DNA of 64,000 nt, taken from positions 36,270,001-36,334,000 of the forward strand of contig OY740792.1 in NCBI GenBank assembly GCA_963514005.1, in the 5' to 3' direction. The notes beneath the pieces are model-generated. The model searched no databases. It was not told the origin of the DNA and was given only the letters and a program-made list of their open reading frames with translations. Shown here piece after piece: positions 3,549 through 60,787 of this stretch; the stretch's first letter is position 1, and each line of letters opens with the position of its first letter. The stretch comes from Raja brachyura (taxonomy: Eukaryota). Made by a program: the position numbers and the translations under genes.

Positions 3549-3622
3549 CTGTGGATCCACCCATTAAAATGGGCGGTTCACCTATCTGCCAAAATCCGAC
3601 TGAGGATCTGACAACGAGGTAC

Positions 3623-4051
3623 CTAGTGGCTGAACTTTGATGGTTTTGATGGTTGCCTCTTTCTCATGGAGCTTCTTCCAGTTGAAGCCATCTTCTTTGA
3701 CCCACTCGGCTGCCACACATGAATAGACACCACTGTCCCCCAGCTGCAAGTGGTCAACGATGAGTCCGAAGACGCCGTTTCCCTCCAAGCTCATCCTAAC
3801 GTCGCCGTGCCAATATCGATCGGTGTACGAAGCCCCGGGTAGTAACTGGTCATCTGCAGTGAAGGACAGGATGTCCTCTGGACCAGCTCCGTTTTTCGTC
3901 AACTGCCACGTGACGGAGAGATGGGTGGAAACGGTTGACGATGTTGACGTCGATGCAACACACTGTATCTCCATGGGCGTCCCTTCTGTGTGGTTTGTGT
4001 TGGTTAGGCTTCTGGACTTTGCAGGCAGCACAGCCAGTTTATCGGGAATCA
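3623..4051 (-). CDS. PTGFRN: PTGFRN-like exon 3, Ig-V domain 2 (EWI-motif domain, here EWV)
   Basis: Acceptor ttcatacag|TG, donor CTAG|gtacct, 429 bp, phase 1-1. Encodes VIPDKL..EGTPMEIQC..HLSVTW..DSGVYSCVAAEWVKE. Confidence 0.9.
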
Positions 4052-4053
4052 CT

Positions 4054-29620: not shown

Positions 29621-30239
29621 ATATATGTCTTACATATATATCTTAATTTCATTGAACCATATACGATTGAATATGTGGCATTATTTTTGTCTTGTTTCTA
29701 TAGTCAAAGGGTAAGGTTGATTGATTTCTTTGTGCAGAACAGTGATGGAAGTCCAACTTGCCTTGTTTCTGTTTTTTTCTCTCTCTATATATATATAAAT
29801 ATATATATGCATAACAGCATGAATCTGATTTCAATACATGAATATAGTCATGTGGTGCACCTGTTGGTCAGAGCCTGGCTCTACTGTGGAATGTAATTTA
29901 GCCTAACCTTATTCATACCGCATCCAATTTAAAGCATAAATGTTGCATTCAAGTGTAAGTTAAAAGACTCACTACAGTATACACCAGACTGCACAATTTC
30001 AAGCTGAAAAATGCAAAAGCTACCTACTGTGGGAGGGATGTGTCCCCACTCCGTCACTACGCTCCCTCGCAATTTCTCACACTCAACTCTCACCCAATGT
30101 TGGCAGCCCTGACTATATACAAAAGCAATTTCACTGGACCTCAGTACGTGTGACATTAAAGTACCATTGAACCGGCGGTTATCACACCGAGATTTCACAG
30201 ATATCACAATGAAATGACACTGCTCTGGTTCTTGATTAG

Positions 30240-30985
30240 CGACACCCACCCCCTCACCGTCTGCCCGAAGGGGCGGTAGCTGGGAAAGAAGGCAGCGATA
30301 ATGAAGGGTATATTCGATGGGTAAAACTACCTCGGGGGCGAGTAGCCCTGGCGCAGCGTCCGGGACCCGCCCGCCCGCCGGCCTGGAGTCTCACAACACC
30401 GTTCTCCACCTCCCCCCAGTTGCACGCCCACTCTCACTTTCTCTCCCCCCCCCCCCTTCTTTTCCTCTTCCCCCTTCTCTCACTCTCTTTACTTCCCTTT
30501 ATCCCACCCTATCACCCTCCCCATTCCCACCTCCCTCTCTCCCTACTTCCTCCCCACTCCTTCTCACCCTTCCCCCTTCTCTCCATCCCCATTCCTTCTC
30601 TCCCTCCCTTTCTCCCCCAGACTCACCGCAGAGCAGCGCCGGCAGCAGCAGCAGGAGGATCGTGGCGGAGCGCCGCATGTCCCCGCCGGGATGGCCTCGC
30701 CTCGCCTCGCCTCGCCTCTCCCCTCGCAGTCTCAGTCTCCCCCGGCTTCACGCCCGGGCTCCCGGTGTCGCTCCCCGCACCATGGGGCGGTCTCCCGCTC
30801 CGCCGCTCGCTGCAGACACTGAACCAGAATCAGACCTCCCCCAAGAGTACAAGCCGGGCTCGCTGGCGGCCGGGAGGGAGGGAGGGAGGGAACACACAGC
30901 GCTGGGAACCAAAGATCTTTCCTGGGAACCGCTGCGCTGCCAGCCCGACAGGTAATGGGAGCGGGTAGAAGGCGGGCGGATCTCC
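30240..30985 (-). promoter_or_regulatory. CpG-island promoter / 5' UTR of PTGFRN-like gene
   Basis: Sharp rise in GC and CpG around exon 1, GGGCGG boxes (e.g. ~30785, ~30975), no clear TATA box. TSS cannot be determined from sequence. Confidence 0.7.
30627..30678 (-). CDS. PTGFRN: PTGFRN-like coding exon 1 (signal peptide MRRSATILLLLLPALLC + G, phase 1)
   Basis: ATG at 30678 (context GGGGAC-ATG), Leu-rich hydrophobic core, donor G|GTGAGT at 30627/30626. Joins exon 2 in frame to give ...LLCGLTSG-RVVKVP, like PTGFRN ..CRG-RVVRVP. Lies in a CpG island. Confidence 0.85.
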
Positions 30986-31275
30986 ACCCTCTCCCCGCCT
31001 CCTCCACCCTCTCCCCGCCTCCTCTCCTTCCCTCCCACCTCTCTCTAGGATCTTTCCTCTCTCTCTCTCTTTCCTCTCCTCCCCTCCCACTCTCTCCTTC
31101 CCTTCCACCTCTCCCCCCCCCCTCCTTCCTTCCCTCCCGCCTCTCTCTCCTCTCCCCCTGCGTTCTCCCTCCCTCTCACACACCCCACTCCCTCCTTCTT
31201 TGCTTCCTTCCATTCCTCCCCCACATCCCCTCCCCATCGACCTCACTGCCTCCTCTCTTTCTTCCCGTCTCACTC
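30985..31275. repeat. Polypyrimidine (CT-rich) low-complexity tract upstream of the promoter
   Basis: Nearly pure C/T on the + strand; a second such tract lies at 30430-30618. Confidence 0.8.
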
Positions 31276-31944
31276 AATCCCTGTGGGACTTCACTACTGC
31301 TCCTTGTTACAAATGTACACATGGGCTACTTTGTTACTTCACCCCTGCAACAGTTTGATTTGTAATAAAGTGGGATATGTATTAAAACAACTGGAAGAGT
31401 GGCTGCCTCGCAGCACCCCAGGTTCGATCCTGACCATAAGACATAGGAAGAGAATTAGGCCATTCAGCCCATTCGAGTCTGCTCTGCCATTCGACCATGG
31501 TTGATTTACCTTTCCTGCTCAACCCCATTCTCCTGCCTTCTCCGCGTTGCTAATCGAGAACCTGTCAATCTCCGCTTTAAAAATACCCAATGACTTGGTC
31601 TCCAGAGCCATCTGTGGCAATGAATTCCACAGATTCACCACCCTCTGACTAAAGAAATTTCTCCTTGGGTGCTGTCTGTGTGTGGAGTTTACACGTTCTC
31701 CCTGTGACCGCGCGGGTTTTCTCCAGATACTCTGGTTGCCTCCCACATCCCAGTTGGAGTAACTCTCTCTCTCTCCCTCCCTCTCCTCCCCTCCCCTCTC
31801 CTCCCTGGAGGTCAGGCAGCACCGCTGAGGGCCAGGAGTCAAAAGTGTTTTATCGTTTTGTGTACCTAAATAGAACAATGAAATTCTTACTTGCAGCAGC
31901 ATTGCAAGTCTGTAAACACAGTACTCATAGATAACACATTAGCA

Positions 31945-32235
31945 GCACAGAAGCGGGCCCTTCAGTCCACCGACTCCACGCCGACCTCCGATCCCTGTAC
32001 ACCAGCACTATCCTACACACTAGGGACAATTTACAATTTTTTACTGAAGCCAATTAACCTATGAACCTGTACATCTTTAGAGTGTGGAAGGAAACCAGAG
32101 CACCCATGGTCCAGAAAAAACAAAACCCACGTGGCCACAGGGAAAATGTACAAGTTCCGAACAGACAGCACCCATAGTCAGGGTTGAACCCAGGGCTCTG
32201 GGGCTGTGAGGCAGCAACTCTACCACTGTGCTATT
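31945..32235 (-). mobile_element. HE1-like V-SINE
   Basis: Family motifs on the minus strand. Confidence 0.78.
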
Positions 32236-41376: not shown

Positions 41377-43090
41377 CAGAGCTGCCAACTCTCACGCATT
41401 GAGCGTGAGTGTCACACATTTCGCCCAATTCTCACCCTTTCACGCTGATCACAGAATTTCTCACGCCCTGTCGAGAGAAATTCTGTGATCAACAAGAATT
41501 TCAAAACTAATATCAACTGCTTGTGTGCGCGTCTGGTGACAAGACAGCAGCATTCTTATTTTCTATTATTCTCACTTGACCGAACTGTCACACACCTTCA
41601 ATCCATGTCCCCATGCAAAATTACATTGAAAGACATGGCAGTGAATGAGTGTCACCCAGCGCAGCAAGTAAGGCCATGTCCTGCTCCCGGCGGCAGTCGG
41701 AATTTAAGGATTTGCGGGAATCGGCTGACATGAGCGAGCGACAGGAGAGAGGTACATGGGCCGTGGAACCGGGGGGGGGGGCTTTGGATGAGGTGCTGCT
41801 GTGCTCTGAGCAACGTGGTTGTGGGTGTAGGAGAGCCGGGGCGGAGGGAGGGATGGAAGCAGAAGCAGCGCGCGGGGGCAGATGCAGACGGGGAGCCGAG
41901 GCTGGCGTGTGTTTGCCAGGCTGGCGAGCTGCTCGCTGCAGCTCCAGCCATGGAGTAGCCTCAGTGCAAGAGTCCCGGGCCGTCGGAGGTATCGGAAGCG
42001 TTGCACTGCTGCCGTGAGAGTCCATGCGCCAAATTCGTCCTGGTGACCGGCATGGACCAGGCTGCGGCTCGGTACATCCTGCAGGACAACCAGTGGCTGC
42101 TGGAAGTAGGTACCAAGCACTGGATACAAGCGGTGGAAGACAGTGGCCTTTAAATGGGGGTGGTTGGAAAAAGCATCCTGCTTGTCTGCTAGATTTTCAC
42201 TTGCTGTAACTGCAGGAAAAATGTTCCCGATGTTGGGGAAGTTCAAAACCAGGGGTCACAGTTTAAGAAAAAGGGGTAGGCCATTTAGGGCTGAGATGAG
42301 GACAAACTTTCTTCACCCAGAGAGTTGTAAATCTGTGGAATTCACTGCCACAGGAGGCAGTGGAGGCCAATTCACTGGATGTTTTCAAGAGAGAATTACA
42401 TTTAGCTCTTGGGGCTAGCGAAATCAAGGGATATGGGGAAAAAACAGGAAAGAGGCACTGATTTTAGATGAACGACCATGATCGTATTGGATGGCAGTGC
42501 TGGCTCGAATAGTCGAATGGCCTATTGATGGTATTTTCTATGTTTCTATGCTTGAGTTTATGGCAATAAAACTCAACCACTTGATTTTGAAGCATTCATG
42601 CATGGTGGAGGTATAATGTAGTCATAGTGTGATACAGTGTGAAATCAGGCCCTTCGGCCCAACTTGCCCACACCCGCCAACATGTCCCAGCTACGCCACC
42701 TGCTTTTGGTCCCTATCCCTCCAAACCTGTCCTATTCATGTATCAGTTTAACTGTTTCTTAAATGTTGGGATAGTCCCTGCCTCAACTACCTCCTCTGGC
42801 AGCTTGTTCCAAACACCCCCCTTTGTGTGGAAAAAGTTACCCCTTAAAGAGTTACCTCTTAAAAATGCTTTAAACAAAAAACATTGAAATCATACTTCTA
42901 CAATGCACTAAAACATGATTTTAATACATCGTCCCCCCCCCCCCCCCCCCCACCCCATCCGACACCCTCCCCCCCCCCCCCCCCCCACCCCATCCCACAC
43001 CCCCCCCCCCCCCCTCAGTTCCTACGCTCTCTCGGGCTTGGTCTCTCACAATTTCTCACTCCCAACTCTCATTCAATGTTGGCAGCCCTA
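41377..43090. mobile_element. Non-autonomous hAT-type DNA transposon (1.7 kb) inserted in a CR1
   Basis: TIRs CAGAGCTGCCAAC / GTTGGCAGCCCTA; 8-bp TSD TGTCAAAC / CGTCAAAC. Host CR1 is contiguous across the site; nested CR1 pieces at ~42205-42550 and ~42620-42845. Confidence 0.8.
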
Positions 43091-43861: not shown

Positions 43862-44338
43862 GACACAAGGAACTGCAGATGCTGGTTTACAAAACAAGAC
43901 ACAAAGTTCTGGGTTAACTCAGTGGGTCAGGCAACATCTCAGGAGAACATGGATTGGTGATGTTTCGGGTTAGGACCCTTCTTCAGACTGATTGTAATGG
44001 GAGGAGGGAAGAGGGAATGAATCTGGGAAAGAGGAGAGGAGGGACAAAGCCTGGCAAGTAAAATGTGGAAACAATTCCCCACATTCTTTCTCTTGAAATC
44101 ACACGCTCCCTGGCCAGCCTCCCTACCTACCTACCAGGCACCGCCCTGCCTAAGGTCATCTGTGGCTGGTCGTAATTGGTCCTGTCTTTTCTTGCCTCCA
44201 GCTTTTCACCTCCACCCCCCCATCCCACCCCCCAATTTTCAGTCTGAAGAAGGATCCCAACCCAAAATGGTACCCATCCGTTTTCTCCAGAGATGCTACC
44301 CGACCCGCTGAGTTGCTCCAGCACTTTGTGTCTATCTT
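43862..44338. repeat. Long PLE-derived fold-back element
   Basis: Cores at ~43960-43986 (-) and ~44244 (+). Confidence 0.72.
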
Positions 44339-46478
44339 AAGCAATAGTTTGATACAGGTGAGGAGGGTTTTTGATAGTTAGCTGGTTGGACAAAAGCCAG
44401 AGCTGAAAAGACCTTCTGTGGGAGACTAAAGGATCGAAGAGTTGTGAATTGTGAAGCTGGAGGAAGCAGCAGACTCGTAATTTTATATTTTTAATTGAGC
44501 TACTTTATGCTAGAGTGATTCACTCATTATTATAATTACACCTCAAAGCTCTTGCCTGCTTACTGGAATTATGTTTACTGGACCGCCTAGACCTATTTCC
44601 TTCACTCCATAGATGCTGCCTCACCCGCTGAGTTTCTCCAGCAATTTTGTCTACCTTCGATTTTCCAGCATCTGCAGTCCCTTCTTAAAGAAATAGTTCC
44701 ACTTATGCTAAGTTTCAAACCTTGATGTTATAAGTTCTTAAGTTCATGTCATGGGAACAGAATTAGACCATTTGACCCATTGAATCTGCACTGTTATTCC
44801 ATCATGGTTGATCTATCTTTCATTCTCAACCTCATTCTCCTGCTTTCTCCCCATAACCTTTGACACAATGCTGGTTTGCTTAATGAAGGGGGGGATTATG
44901 TTATAAACACGCTGCTACGATGATAGTAACTGTGGTTAATTATGATGGACATTTCAGGACACTTTTCAGGTTTAGGTTTATGATTGTCACGTGTTCCCAG
45001 GTACAGTAATTAGCTGTGTTTTGCGTGTATTCCATGCAGTTCATACCATACATGAGTACAACAGATCAATCAAAAGAGGAAATACACGGAGTGCGGAATA
45101 TAGTGTTATAGCTACAGAGAAAGTACAAATAAAATAAGTGCACGGGCCACAATGAGGTAGATTGGAAGATTGGGTCATTTATCCCCAGCATATGAGTGGT
45201 TTAGATTTATTTTGTCACGTGTACAGTGAAAAGCTTTGTTTGCAAGCTATCCAATTAAAGCAGCTAATACTACAGTATATACAAATACAATCATGCCGAA
45301 CTCAAGTACAATAGAGCAAAAAGATACAGAGTGCAGGATAGAGTTCTCCGCATTGTTGGACATCAGTTACAGAGGCAAAGTCCAACGTCCGCAATGGGTA
45401 CATTTGGAGAATCGAGAATAGTGAAAAGCCTGGATAAAATGGATGTGAAGAGGATATTTTCACTAGTGGGAGAGTCTCAGACCAGAGGACCCAGCCTCAG
45501 AATAAAGGGCATACCTTTAGAAAGGAGATGAGGGGAATTTCTTTAGTCAGAGGGTGGTGAATCATTGCCACAGACGGCTTTGGAGGCCAAGACATTTGGT
45601 ATTTTTCAGATGGAGATTGACAGGTTCTTGATTAGAAGGGTGTCAAAGGATATGGGGAGAAGGCAGGAGAATGGGGCTGAGAGGGAAAAATAGATCAGCC
45701 ATGATTGAATGGCGGCGTAAACTCGATGGGCTGAATAGTCTACTTCTGCTTCTATGAGTTGAGTTTAGTTTATTGTGTACCGAGGTACAGTGAAAAGCTT
45801 TTGTCGGACACTACCTAGTCAGCGGAAAGACAATACATGACTGCATTCGAGCCATCCACAGTGTACAGATACAGGATAAAGGGAATAATGTGAATAACAT
45901 TTAGTGCAAGATAAAGTCCAGTAGTCCGACCAAAGATAGTTTGAGTGTCTCCATGGAGGAAGATGGTAGGTCAGGGCTGCTCTCGAGGCGTTGGTAGGAT
46001 GGGTTTATGACTTACGAACTCATGAACAATGACGGACTCACCCTGATATGGATAGAGATAGCAACCAATAATCAAACCAAGCTTGCCCAAGGTCACCCAA
46101 CTATCAAAGGCAGTCACATGGAGAGCACGTCTCTCTTGCTTCCAGAAACATGCAATTCCTGTTGGAAACAGGTCTTCCCACAAACAACTCTTTCCAGCTA
46201 TGCCTTTGGGGGTTCCCTTGCTGACAGGTACAGTGATATTTCCCTAAACAGAGACAGTCAGCAAACAACCGTGAACAGTGGACGAGGCAAGACTGGTCTG
46301 TGTGCCACATGGCAGAAGGATTCCGGTGATTATGGGCGATACCCGACAGCGGACCTCATTCGCCCACCGCGGAACCGGGAACATGCCCGGAAAGACACGG
46401 TGGTCCATGGTCTGTGGAGGGGAGGGGGGGTTGGAAGCCGAGCCCGGCCCCTGCTCATCTCCCGAAGACTGGAGAACC

Positions 46479-46613
46479 TTCTTCTTTCGTGTTGCGTGCG
46501 CAGCCTAAAGTTGTTGGACAACTTGTTCTATTTGATCTTCCGTTTGTGCACGCCGAGTTGATTGTATTAGTCGTAACAGGGCGGACCACATGAAGGTTGC
46601 AATCTTCTACCCC
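46479..46613 (-). mobile_element. 135-bp ribozyme-headed non-autonomous retroposon (possibly Ingi/Vingi-dependent)
   Basis: Flanked by an 11-bp TSD, ACTGGAGAACC (46468-46478) and ACCGGAGAACC (46614-46624). The 5' end is ribozyme G1 and the 3' end is CACGAAAGAAGAA. Confidence 0.8.
46560..46613 (-). ncRNA. HDV/CPEB3-like self-cleaving ribozyme (minimal P4)
   Basis: Minus strand reads P1 GGGGTAG / J1/2 AA / P2 GATTGCA / P3 ACC / L3 TTCATGT / P3' GGT / P1' CCGCCCT / GT-TACG-A / J4/2 CTAA / P2' TACAATC. G1-U wobble and putative catalytic C are present; P1 and P2 each have one mismatch. Confidence 0.8.
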
Positions 46614-47999
46614 ACCGGAGAACCGAAGAGGAGGGAGCCAGTGACGACGGTCACGAGGCGCAAGGCCGGTAGGAAAGTGAACCGGGGTCTTACCTCCCAC
46701 GCCCTCAAGGCCACAGGGCACAAAGGTAGCAGGGCGAGGAGAGGGACGATGGTTCATTGGACCATCCAGACATAGGCGATGGCTGGAGACCCTGCAGAAG
46801 CCTGGGGCTCACCTGGATGGGCGCCTCTCCATAAGACCTAGCGGGGGTAGAAACGGCGCAAAATCTGGTCACTTGAAAAGGAATTTCACTGCATTTTGCA
46901 CATGTGATAATAAAGCACGATTGCCTTTCACAACTGCTGACACAGACTCCAATCTGTGGAAGCTTGCCAATGTTTGAGTCACCTGGGCCATTTGTATTTC
47001 TTTATATCCAATGGACAAATGTACACACAACATCCAGCCACACAGACATCTGCTGCAGGCATTTTGATGCCTGTTTCATCACTTGATGTTATGCATGAAA
47101 AGCTTCCTCCCCTCTGTTAACAGACTTCTGAACAGACCGTCCAAAAGCCCGGGTTTAGATTAGAGATACAGCATGGAAACAGAGTCCTCACAGGCCATCC
47201 TCACTCATTCACACTAGTTCTATGTTATCCCACTTTTTCATCCTCTCCCTACACACTAGGGGGAATTTGCAGAGCAAGAGAGAAAATGCAAATTTAAAAA
47301 GTGCAAGAACAGCAAAGAGGTAGATGGAAGATTGAGTAATTCAGCCCCAGCATATGAGAGCTTTGGCCCGCTGAATCCACGCCAACCATCTATCACCCGT
47401 TCACACTAGTTCTATCTTATCCCACTTTCTCATATACAGTCGACAGTCCAAAATATTAGTGAAGGGTGCTGACCCGAAACGTCATCTGTCCATTCTCTCC
47501 ACAAATGCTACCTCACCTGCTGAGTTCCTCCAGCACTGTGTGTTTTGCCCACAATATTATGTCTGGATGTTGCAATTGCTTTTCGATACCCACCTGTTGT
47601 AATCTATGTTTGACTTTATTATGTACATTTTATGCATCTTTGTAACTGAGGAAAGTATAAAAACCTGTCATACTGGCTACTGATATGCATTTTGCCGGAA
47701 GCCTATTTAAAAGTAGCATAGTTACAAGAAGCAATAAGAGAAGTATTTAGTGGTGTGAAGTGAATCAAAAGTGAAAATAAATGATGCAAAAGAGAAGAAA
47801 ACACTCCTATTACTAATTTATAGAGTCTCATAGCTGTACTGTACAACCCATTCAGCCCATCTTGTCCTTGCCGACCAAGTTGGCATATTGGGCTGCCATC
47901 ATTTATCCCATTTGCCTGCATTTGGCCCATATCCCTCTAAATCCTTCCTACCCGAATCCCTGTCCAAATGTCTTTTTAAAGAGTTTAGACTTGAACCTT

Positions 48000-48285
48000 C
48001 GGAGATACAGCACGGAAACAGGCCCTTCGTCTCATTGAGTCCGTGCCGATCAGCGATCCCTGCAAACTAGCACTATCCTACACACGGGACGATGTACAAT
48101 TTTTACCAAAGCCAATTAACACACAAACTTGTTCATCTTTGGAGTGTAGGAGGAAACTGGAGCACCCAAAAAAAAACCAAGTGGTCACAGGGAGAACGTA
48201 CAAACTCCACACAGACAGTACCCGTACTCAGGATTGAACCCGGGACTCTGGCGATGTAAGGCAGCAACTCTACCGCTGCGCCACC
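48000..48285 (-). mobile_element. HE1-like V-SINE
   Basis: Near full-length copy. Confidence 0.8.
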
Positions 48286-48944: not shown

Positions 48945-49245
48945 TGGCACGGTGGTGCAGCGCCAGAGTAGCTGCCTCACAGCGCTAGAGTCCTGGGTTC
49001 GATCTTGACTACGGGTGCTGTTTGTACACAGTTTGTACGTTCTTCCTGTAAACACTTGGGTTTTCCCCGGGTGCTCCAGTTTCCTCCCACACTCCACAGA
49101 CGTACAGGTTTGTAGGTTAATTAGTTTTGGTAAAATTGTAATTTGTCGCCAGTGTGTAGGATAGAACTAGTGTACATGATGACCGAAGGTTGGCACAGAC
49201 TTGGTGGGCCGAAGGGCTTGTTTCCGCTCTGTTTCTCTAAAAAGT
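48945..49245 (+). mobile_element. HE1-like V-SINE
   Basis: Full-length copy with GGTTCGATC B-box. Confidence 0.8.
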
Positions 49246-59646: not shown

Positions 59647-60787
59647 GTTGGTTAAGAAAGTTCAATCTTTGGGTTTTAATGGCGGAGTAGCAAGATGGAT
59701 TGAACAGTGGCTGAATGGGAGATGCCAGAGAGTAATGGTGGATGGCTGTTTGTCAGGGTGGAAGCCGGTGACCTGTGGGGTGCCTCAGGGATCTGTGTTG
59801 GGTCCACTGTTGTTTGTCATGTACATCAATGATCTAGACGATGGGGTGGAAAATTGGATAAGTAAGTATGCAGATGATACTAAGATAGGTGGTGCTGTGG
59901 ATAATGAAATAGATTTTCAAAGTCTACAGAGAGATTTGGGCCATTTGGAAGAGTGGGCTGAAAGATGGCAGATGGAGTTTAATGCTGATAAGTGTGAGGT
60001 GCTACATCTTGGCAGGACAAATCAAAATAGGACGTACGTGGTAAATGGTAGGGAATTGAGGAATGCTGTGGAACAGAGGGATCTAGGAATAACTGTGCAT
60101 AGTTCCCTGAAGGTGGAATTGCATGTAGATAGGGTGGTAAAGAAAGCTTTTGGTGTGCTGGCCTTTATAAATCAGAGCATTGAATATAGGAGTAGGGAAG
60201 TAATGTTAAAATTGTACAAGGCATTGGTGAGACCAATTCTGGAGTATGGTGTACAATTTTGGTCGCCTAATTATAGGAAGGATGTCAACAAAATAGAGAG
60301 AGTACAGAGGAGATTTACTAGAATGTTGCCTGGGTTCCAGCAACTAAGTTACAGAGAAAGGTTGAACAAGTTAGGTCTTTATTCTTTGGAGAGCAGAAGG
60401 TTAAGGGGGGACTTGATTGAGGTCTTTAAAATAATGAAAGGGATAGACAGAGTTGACGTGGATAAGCTCTTCCCATTGAGGGTAGGGAAGATTCAAACAA
60501 GAGGGCATGACATGAGAATTAAGGGACAGAAGTTTAGGGGTAACATGAGGGGGAACTTCTTTACTGAGAGAGTGGTGGCTGTGTGGAATGATCTTCCAGC
60601 AGAAGTGGTGGAGGCAGGATCGATTTTAACATTTAAAAGTAAAGTGGATAGGTATATGGACGGGAAGGGAATGGAGGGGTATGGTCTGAGTGCAGGTAGA
60701 TGGGACTAGGGGAAAATAAATGGTCGGCACAGACTGGAAGTGCCGAGAAGGCCTGTTTCCGTGCTGTAATTGTTATATGGTTATATG
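59647..60787 (+). mobile_element. Young 5'-truncated CR1 (HER1-like) LINE with open ORF2 RT/C-terminal fragment
   Basis: ORF 59648-60709, 353 aa without a stop: GVPQGSVLGPLLF, YADDTK, WQMEFN, RRLRGDLIEVFKI. 3' tail GAAGGCCTGTTTCCGTGCTGTA is shared with the SINEs. Confidence 0.92.

Follow-up and report, generated by a model that had tools for sequence, protein, structure and literature searches.

An abundant retroposon in a vertebrate genome headed by a predicted minimal HDV-like ribozyme

Short mobile elements that lack a recognizable promoter raise the question of how each new copy acquires an exact 5' end. This question is posed by a 135-nt insertion on the minus strand at positions 46479-46613 of a 64,000-nt stretch of the Raja brachyura genome (assembly GCA_963514005.1, contig OY740792.1, positions 36,270,001 to 36,334,000), hereafter the window. 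A first-pass annotation of the sequence alone described this insertion as a retroposon that is essentially a mobile HDV/CPEB3-like ribozyme. On re-analysis, the annotated insertion, its boundaries and its sequence were all confirmed. The proposed interpretation was only partly supported, as the retroposon and the fit of its first 54 nt to an HDV-like fold held up, whereas the suggested Ingi/Vingi partner did not gain support and self-cleavage remains an inference from sequence.

A precise insertion from a very abundant family

On the minus strand, the locus reads CTCTTC, the upstream target-site duplication (TSD) GGTTCTCCGGT (46624-46614), an element that begins GGGGTAGAAGATTGCAACC and ends CACGAAAGAAGAA (46613 down to 46479), the downstream TSD GGTTCTCCAGT (46478-46468), and CTTCGG. 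The two 11-bp direct repeats are identical at 10 of 11 positions. No other copy of the element was found within the window. To define the family and its ends independently of the annotation, contigs of four public runs, representing the source organism (label A) and the species labels B, C and F, were aligned to 46379-46713 at 80% likeness or better, and between 6,420 and 7,826 contigs per run matched. In run X1, the summed contig depth was 3.5 in the unique flank (46379-46426) and 0.3-1.7 million inside the element. Depth rose from 264 to 96,021 between the bins 46463-46474 and 46475-46486, and fell from 216,726 to 290 between the bins 46607-46618 and 46619-46630. Because summed depth is not a copy number, these values are read only as indicating at least many thousands of copies, plausibly 1e5.

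Loose contig ends, at which the alignment stops and the sequences continue differently, clustered at the element's boundaries. At 46478 (418-453 contigs per run), they continued as (TTC)n on the plus strand, which is (GAA)n on the element's strand, and then as unrelated AT-rich DNA; loose ends before 46494 likewise continued as (TTC)n. The 3' tail of this copy (46479-46494) reads AACACGAAAGAAGAA, and other copies run on as (GAA)n. At 46613 (111-131 contigs) and 46614 (125-141 contigs), the loose parts were AT-rich and agreed with one another at only 0.34. A further 49-55 contigs in runs X1 and X4 broke at 46605 and continued CCCACCCC before diverging, which identifies a minority subfamily that begins GGGGUGGG at exactly the same first base. 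The 5' end of the family is therefore G1 (46613), give or take one T that the T-rich upstream flanks often supply by chance, and its 3' end is the (GAA)n tail.

The DNA in which the element landed (46439-46474 and 46619-46713) is itself a moderately repeated, GC-rich and older family, with a summed depth of 190-690 in X1 and many CpG-type variants. One paralogue of this host repeat, recovered in X1 and X3, aligned up to 46478 and resumed at 46655, and the 30 intervening letters matched 46625-46654 at 21 of 30 positions and at 20 of the first 24. This paralogue therefore has one copy of the target and none of the 135 nt, as a precise insertion with target-site duplication predicts. Contigs of the source run with no differences ran across or reached both junctions, and a contig of label C (X4) bridged the 3' junction with two differences, so the insertion is shared with that close relative. 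A contig at single-copy depth from the more distant label F (run X14) joined 46427 to exactly 46614, the base before G1, with unknown letters between; it may represent an orthologous site without the element, but it cannot be read with confidence and no claim is based on it.

No pol III-type head was detected in or around the element: a tRNA search was negative, and Rfam searches at E<=10 on 3 kb and on 156 nt returned no tRNA, 5S, 7SL or snRNA hit, so it is not a SINE in the strict sense. The element is a non-coding cellular retroposon and not a virus or provirus. A partner LINE was sought through the 3' end, but neither (GAA)4 nor a tail-like sequence occurred elsewhere in the window. A LINE fragment at 59648-60709 (+), a 353-aa ORF with a reverse-transcriptase domain (RVT_1, E = 1.7e-16), shares no sequence with the element and is not its evident partner. 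Additionally, exact-pattern scans with a 3'-domain pattern and a ribozyme-core pattern across metagenome contigs (twice), viral contigs and bacterial/archaeal genome contigs gave no hits.

The window also holds other repeats, including three to four diverged copies (76-86%) of another short interspersed repeat at 44249-44331, 44605-44647, 47461-47543 and 48963-48980, with the core CTCCAGAGATGCTGCC..CCGCTGAGTT.CTCCAGCA, which resembles a SINE common in elasmobranch sequences. A 185-nt inverted repeat, 82% complementary with arms 665 nt apart (48101-48285 and 48951-49135), is likely to comprise two oppositely oriented copies of a repeat, and an 82-nt C-rich low-complexity tract (35-nt period, 2.4 copies) occupies 42933-43014. 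Elsewhere, a 156-aa ORF at 3582-4052 (-) contains an immunoglobulin V-set domain (E = 2.4e-6, just above the Pfam cut-off) and is possibly an Ig-superfamily exon, while a GC-rich block at 30001-32000 (GC 0.57, GC skew -0.35) contains several overlapping ORFs of 127-212 aa on both strands, of which the one scanned had no Pfam hit.

Fit of the 5' end to an HDV-like fold

Numbering from G1 (nt p = 46614 minus the plus-strand coordinate), the first 54 nt can be drawn in the nested double-pseudoknot order of HDV-like ribozymes, P1-J1/2-P2-P3-L3-P3'-P1'-P1.1-(P4)-J4/2-P2'. The 5' strand of P1 (46607-46613, nt 1-7, GGGGUAG), whose G1 is the predicted cleavage site, pairs with the 3' strand (46578-46584, nt 30-36, CCGCCCU) at six of seven positions: G1.U36, G2-C35, G3-C34, G4-C33, U5.G32 and G7-C30, with an A6xC31 mismatch. 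J1/2 is A8 A9 (46605-46606). The 5' strand of P2 (46598-46604, nt 10-16, GAUUGCA) pairs with its 3' strand (46560-46566, nt 48-54, UACAAUC) at six of seven positions: G10-C54, A11-U53, U12-A52, U13-A51, G14-C50 and A16-U48, with a C15xA49 mismatch. P3 (46585-46597) consists of A17-U29, C18-G28 and C19-G27 and encloses L3 (nt 20-26, UUCAUGU), which contains U20, C22 and G25. G37 and U38, which partner C22 and U21 in P1.1, are followed by the P4 remnant, nt 39-43 (46571-46577 in all), in which a P4 hairpin is lacking and only U38-A43 could close a UACG loop of this copy. J4/2 (46567-46570) is C44-U45-A46-A47, with C44 (plus-strand G46570) as the putative catalytic cytosine. Downstream, the linker and 3' domain (46495-46559) can form an 8-bp long-range helix between nt 62-69 and 112-119 and a hairpin between nt 90-96 and 100-106.

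A deliberately loose descriptor was written to estimate how often such a fold arises by chance. It required a G.U first pair, at most one mismatch in P1, a P2 of 5-8 bp (one mismatch allowed only at 7 bp or more), a J1/2 of 0-4 nt and a J2/3 of 0-1 nt, an L3 of 7-8 nt with C at its third position, a G after P1, and a spacer of 3-60 nt followed by C-N-R-A. Across both strands of the window (128 kb), it matched exactly once, at 46613(-). However, in 20 Mb of first-order Markov sequence modeled on the window, it fired 5.75 times per Mb, so about 0.7 chance hits per window are expected and the motif by itself is not significant; moreover, the descriptor was written after the sequence had been seen. 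The weight lies in the coincidence of the hit with the first base of a family whose end was defined independently, for which the chance is about 6e-6 per position (5.75e-6), and 3.5e-7 for a form with a perfect P2 of at least 7 bp, as in the family majority.

The first-pass annotation had listed three deviations from the fold in this copy and had set as a test whether the family consensus would repair them; this held for two of the three. Substituting the six majority letters into the copy to list pairs and fold, we found that A49>G (46565, 99% of family depth) turns C15xA49 into C15-G49 and makes P2 (UGCAAUC) a perfect 7-bp helix, whereas U24>C (46590, 90%) makes L3 UUCACGU. A40>U (46574, 99.6%) makes the loop UUCG, showing that the UACG tetraloop in the earlier annotation is a private change of this copy. 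C114>U (46500, 99%) restores A67-U114 in the long-range 3' helix, G61>A (46553, 99%) falls at an unpaired position, and A99>U/G (46515, about 58%) lies in the loop of the 90-106 hairpin. None of the six breaks a predicted pair. The third deviation, A6xC31, is repaired by G6 only in the minority subfamily beginning GGGGUGGG, and most contigs that reach the 5' end retain the mismatch.

The majority L3 is identical to that of Cpeb3, since a published mouse primer that starts 18 nt from the cleavage site (nt 19-33) reads GTTCACGTCGCGGCC and places TTCACGT at nt 20-26, the same place as here. An NMR study of the CPEB3 ribozyme names as core features the G1.U36 wobble, the Mg2+-binding U20.G25 wobble, C22 in a P1.1 of one G-C and one U-U pair, and a 4-nt J4/2 with the catalytic C and two adenines. 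Each has its counterpart at the same number in this element, except that C57 corresponds to C44 because P4 is missing. Within the core, the only freely polymorphic site is U45 (46569; G 23%, A 7%), the N of C-N-A-A, which also differs among known ribozymes. At 46570, neither C44>U, the classical inactivating change, nor C44>G reached 5% in X1, X3 or X4.

Nevertheless, several results weigh against this fold. Rfam HDV, CPEB3 (RF00622) and drz models did not match at E<=10 on 3 kb or on 156 nt, nor at gathering score across the window, where only noise was returned. This is expected to some degree for a P4-less form, because covariance models cannot score the pseudoknots, but it is still a failed test. 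Nested folding energy was no better than that of shuffled sequences (z = 0.2-0.4), although such folding is uninformative for pseudoknots, and an alternative hairpin (nt 10-16 with 24-30) competes. Compensation between strands could be viewed only through per-position shares, which do not show linked double changes: the majority letter restores C15-G49, the G6 subfamily restores G6-C31, and G32>A (46582 C>T, 9%) still pairs with U5. The changes G32>A and C24>U (10%) sit at CpG sites and are explained by decay alone. Furthermore, depth over nt 44-67, which hold J4/2, the P2 3' strand and linker, was 4-5 times lower than over nt 8-31 and 80-115, so this is the more variable part of the family; a linker indel subfamily with loose ends at 46539 accounts for some of the difference. 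The aligned runs were all contigs and none is on record as RNA, and four further runs presumed to be RNA contained only 2-3 of 50 sampled words (shares 0.04-0.06).

Inferred mechanism and alternative explanations

Taken together, we consider it likely that this locus is one slightly decayed copy of a very abundant, non-coding, promoter-less non-LTR retroposon with two modules: a minimal, essentially P4-less HDV/CPEB3-type putative self-cleaving ribozyme (nt 1-54) and a structured 3' domain ending in a (GAA)n tail (nt 55-135). In this view, copies would be transcribed passively inside host transcripts, the ribozyme would cut immediately 5' of G1 and thereby set the exact 5' end of the template, and the reverse transcriptase of an unidentified autonomous LINE would recognize the 3' stem-loops and repeat tail and copy the RNA up to G1 by target-primed reverse transcription, leaving a TSD of about 11 bp. 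Our analysis directly establishes the insertion, its TSD, the sharp family ends at G1 and at the tail, the fit of sequence to fold and the family letters that repair that fold, whereas catalysis, read-through transcription, RNA 5' ends and the LINE partner are inferred. The retroposon itself is virtually certain, while an HDV-like self-cleaving head in the source copies of the family is likely. Given its C15xA49 mismatch and U24 in L3, this copy would probably be a weaker ribozyme than the majority form. The Ingi/Vingi partner suggested by the first-pass annotation was rejected for lack of any evidence.

The principal alternative is that the retroposon is real but its HDV-like drawing is a chance resemblance, with the sharp 5' end arising from a transcription start, such as an unrecognized internal pol III or pol II promoter in the conserved nt 8-31, or from another processing event. 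The expected chance hits, the absence of an Rfam match or thermodynamic signal, the retention of A6xC31 and the lack of testable covariation favor this possibility, and the best-conserved block, nt 8-31, could equally be a promoter element. However, the hit would then have to fall on the first base of the family by chance, the majority letters repair P2 and make L3 identical to Cpeb3, all named CPEB3 core residues sit at the same numbers, and no tRNA, 5S or 7SL likeness was detected; this alternative is therefore considered unlikely, though it is the strongest of those weighed. It is less probable still that a true HDV-like ribozyme was inherited from the 5' end of a parent LINE and is now a passenger, with 5' ends set by template end or template switching and cleavage not needed for mobility. 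R2 SIDEs arose by internal deletion of full elements, so a 5' module can simply be inherited, and the majority form keeps a P1 mismatch. Conversely, the ends are uniform to the nucleotide in two subfamilies, no pile of 5'-truncated ends appeared among the best-supported loose ends, and a promoter-less 135-nt RNA has no other evident way to obtain a defined 5' end. Although the imperfect TSD and the repetitive flanks might suggest an assembly or alignment artefact, or a local duplication that mimics a TSD, this explanation is refuted by the contigs that support both junctions, the thousands of copies that share the same ends and the paralogous empty site.

A more speculative possibility, which we consider improbable but not excluded, is that the single-copy mammalian CPEB3 ribozyme descends from a ribozyme-headed retroposon of this type, given that a CPEB3-type core with the same L3, P1.1 and numbering is carried by a hugely amplified lineage in an early-branching vertebrate. 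It would also mean that tens to hundreds of thousands of potentially self-cleaving sites sit inside the transcripts of this animal, with consequences for intron and mRNA fate.

Comparison with known ribozyme-bearing elements

HDV-like ribozymes define the 5' ends of R2, RTE and L1Tc elements and of the non-autonomous R2 SIDEs and NARTc. The architecture inferred here, a 5' HDV-like ribozyme, a structured 3' end recognized by the reverse transcriptase of a LINE and no pol III head, is that of the R2 and R2/R1 SIDEs of Drosophila and of NARTc relative to L1Tc. Ribozyme-headed non-autonomous retroelements are known only as rare rDNA-bound SIDEs in flies and as the Pr77 elements of trypanosomatids, and P4-less HDV-like ribozymes are reported from gut phages; here, the predicted fold combines the two features in a vertebrate, in one of the most abundant repeats of the genome. 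We found no description of such an element in the literature searched, which did not include most subscription journals or repeat databases such as Repbase and Dfam, and a search for drz-Pmar found nothing. If cleavage were confirmed, this would be the smallest natural eukaryotic HDV-like ribozyme, a class of 'SINE' that needs no promoter, a natural experiment with thousands of sequence variants of one ribozyme and a concrete lead on where the CPEB3 ribozyme came from, and many host introns and UTRs would carry self-cutting sites.

RTE-clade LINEs are also known to carry 5' self-cleaving ribozymes, either HDV-like or, in Schistosoma, twister variants (PMC8501958), together with very short 3' ends that finish in short tandem repeats. 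The tail of the RTE-clade element Rex3, GCG(GAA)2(GATG)n (PMC6274825), shows at most a weak likeness to ACGAAAGAAGAA(GAA)n. The R2 SIDEs and R2/R1 hybrid SIDEs of Drosophila (PMC3414825) are short non-coding elements made of a 5' HDV-like ribozyme, which does cleave, and a LINE 3' end; they are not pol III transcribed, are processed out of a co-transcript and are mobilized by the TPRT machinery of the autonomous element. However, SIDEs sit only in rDNA target sites at low copy number, carry a large R2-type ribozyme and have a known parent, whereas the present family is dispersed in AT-rich targets, has thousands of distinct contigs per genome, carries a predicted 54-nt P4-less ribozyme and has no identified parent. 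NARTc and related trypanosomatid SINE-like elements (PMC3185411, PMC3383444, PMC4035085) share with L1Tc the 5' HDV-like ribozyme Pr77-L1TcRz, which releases the element RNA from co-transcripts. Pr77 is also an internal promoter of 77 nt, the tails are poly(A) and the hosts are protists, while here no promoter evidence was found, the tail is (GAA)n and the host is a vertebrate.

The mammalian CPEB3 intronic ribozyme (PMC4836649, PMC10919898) has a 7-nt P1 and shares the L3 of the family majority, UUCACGU at nt 20-26, along with G1.U36, U20/G25, C22-G37 plus a U-U in P1.1, and a 4-nt J4/2 with C and two A. It nevertheless has a full P4 hairpin and is single-copy in one conserved intron, whereas the present element is a dispersed repeat that the Rfam model does not match; only likeness of the core is shown, not homology. 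Minimal P4-less HDV-like ribozymes, namely drz-Mtgn-1 and the theta ribozymes (bioRxiv 10.1101/2023.06.13.544163), are about 50-60 nt long, cleave in vitro and are inactivated by C>U at the first J4/2 position, so that the missing P4 excludes the classical form but not the minimal one. Those ribozymes are reported from gut bacteriophages, often next to tRNA genes, whereas the candidate described here heads an animal retroposon.
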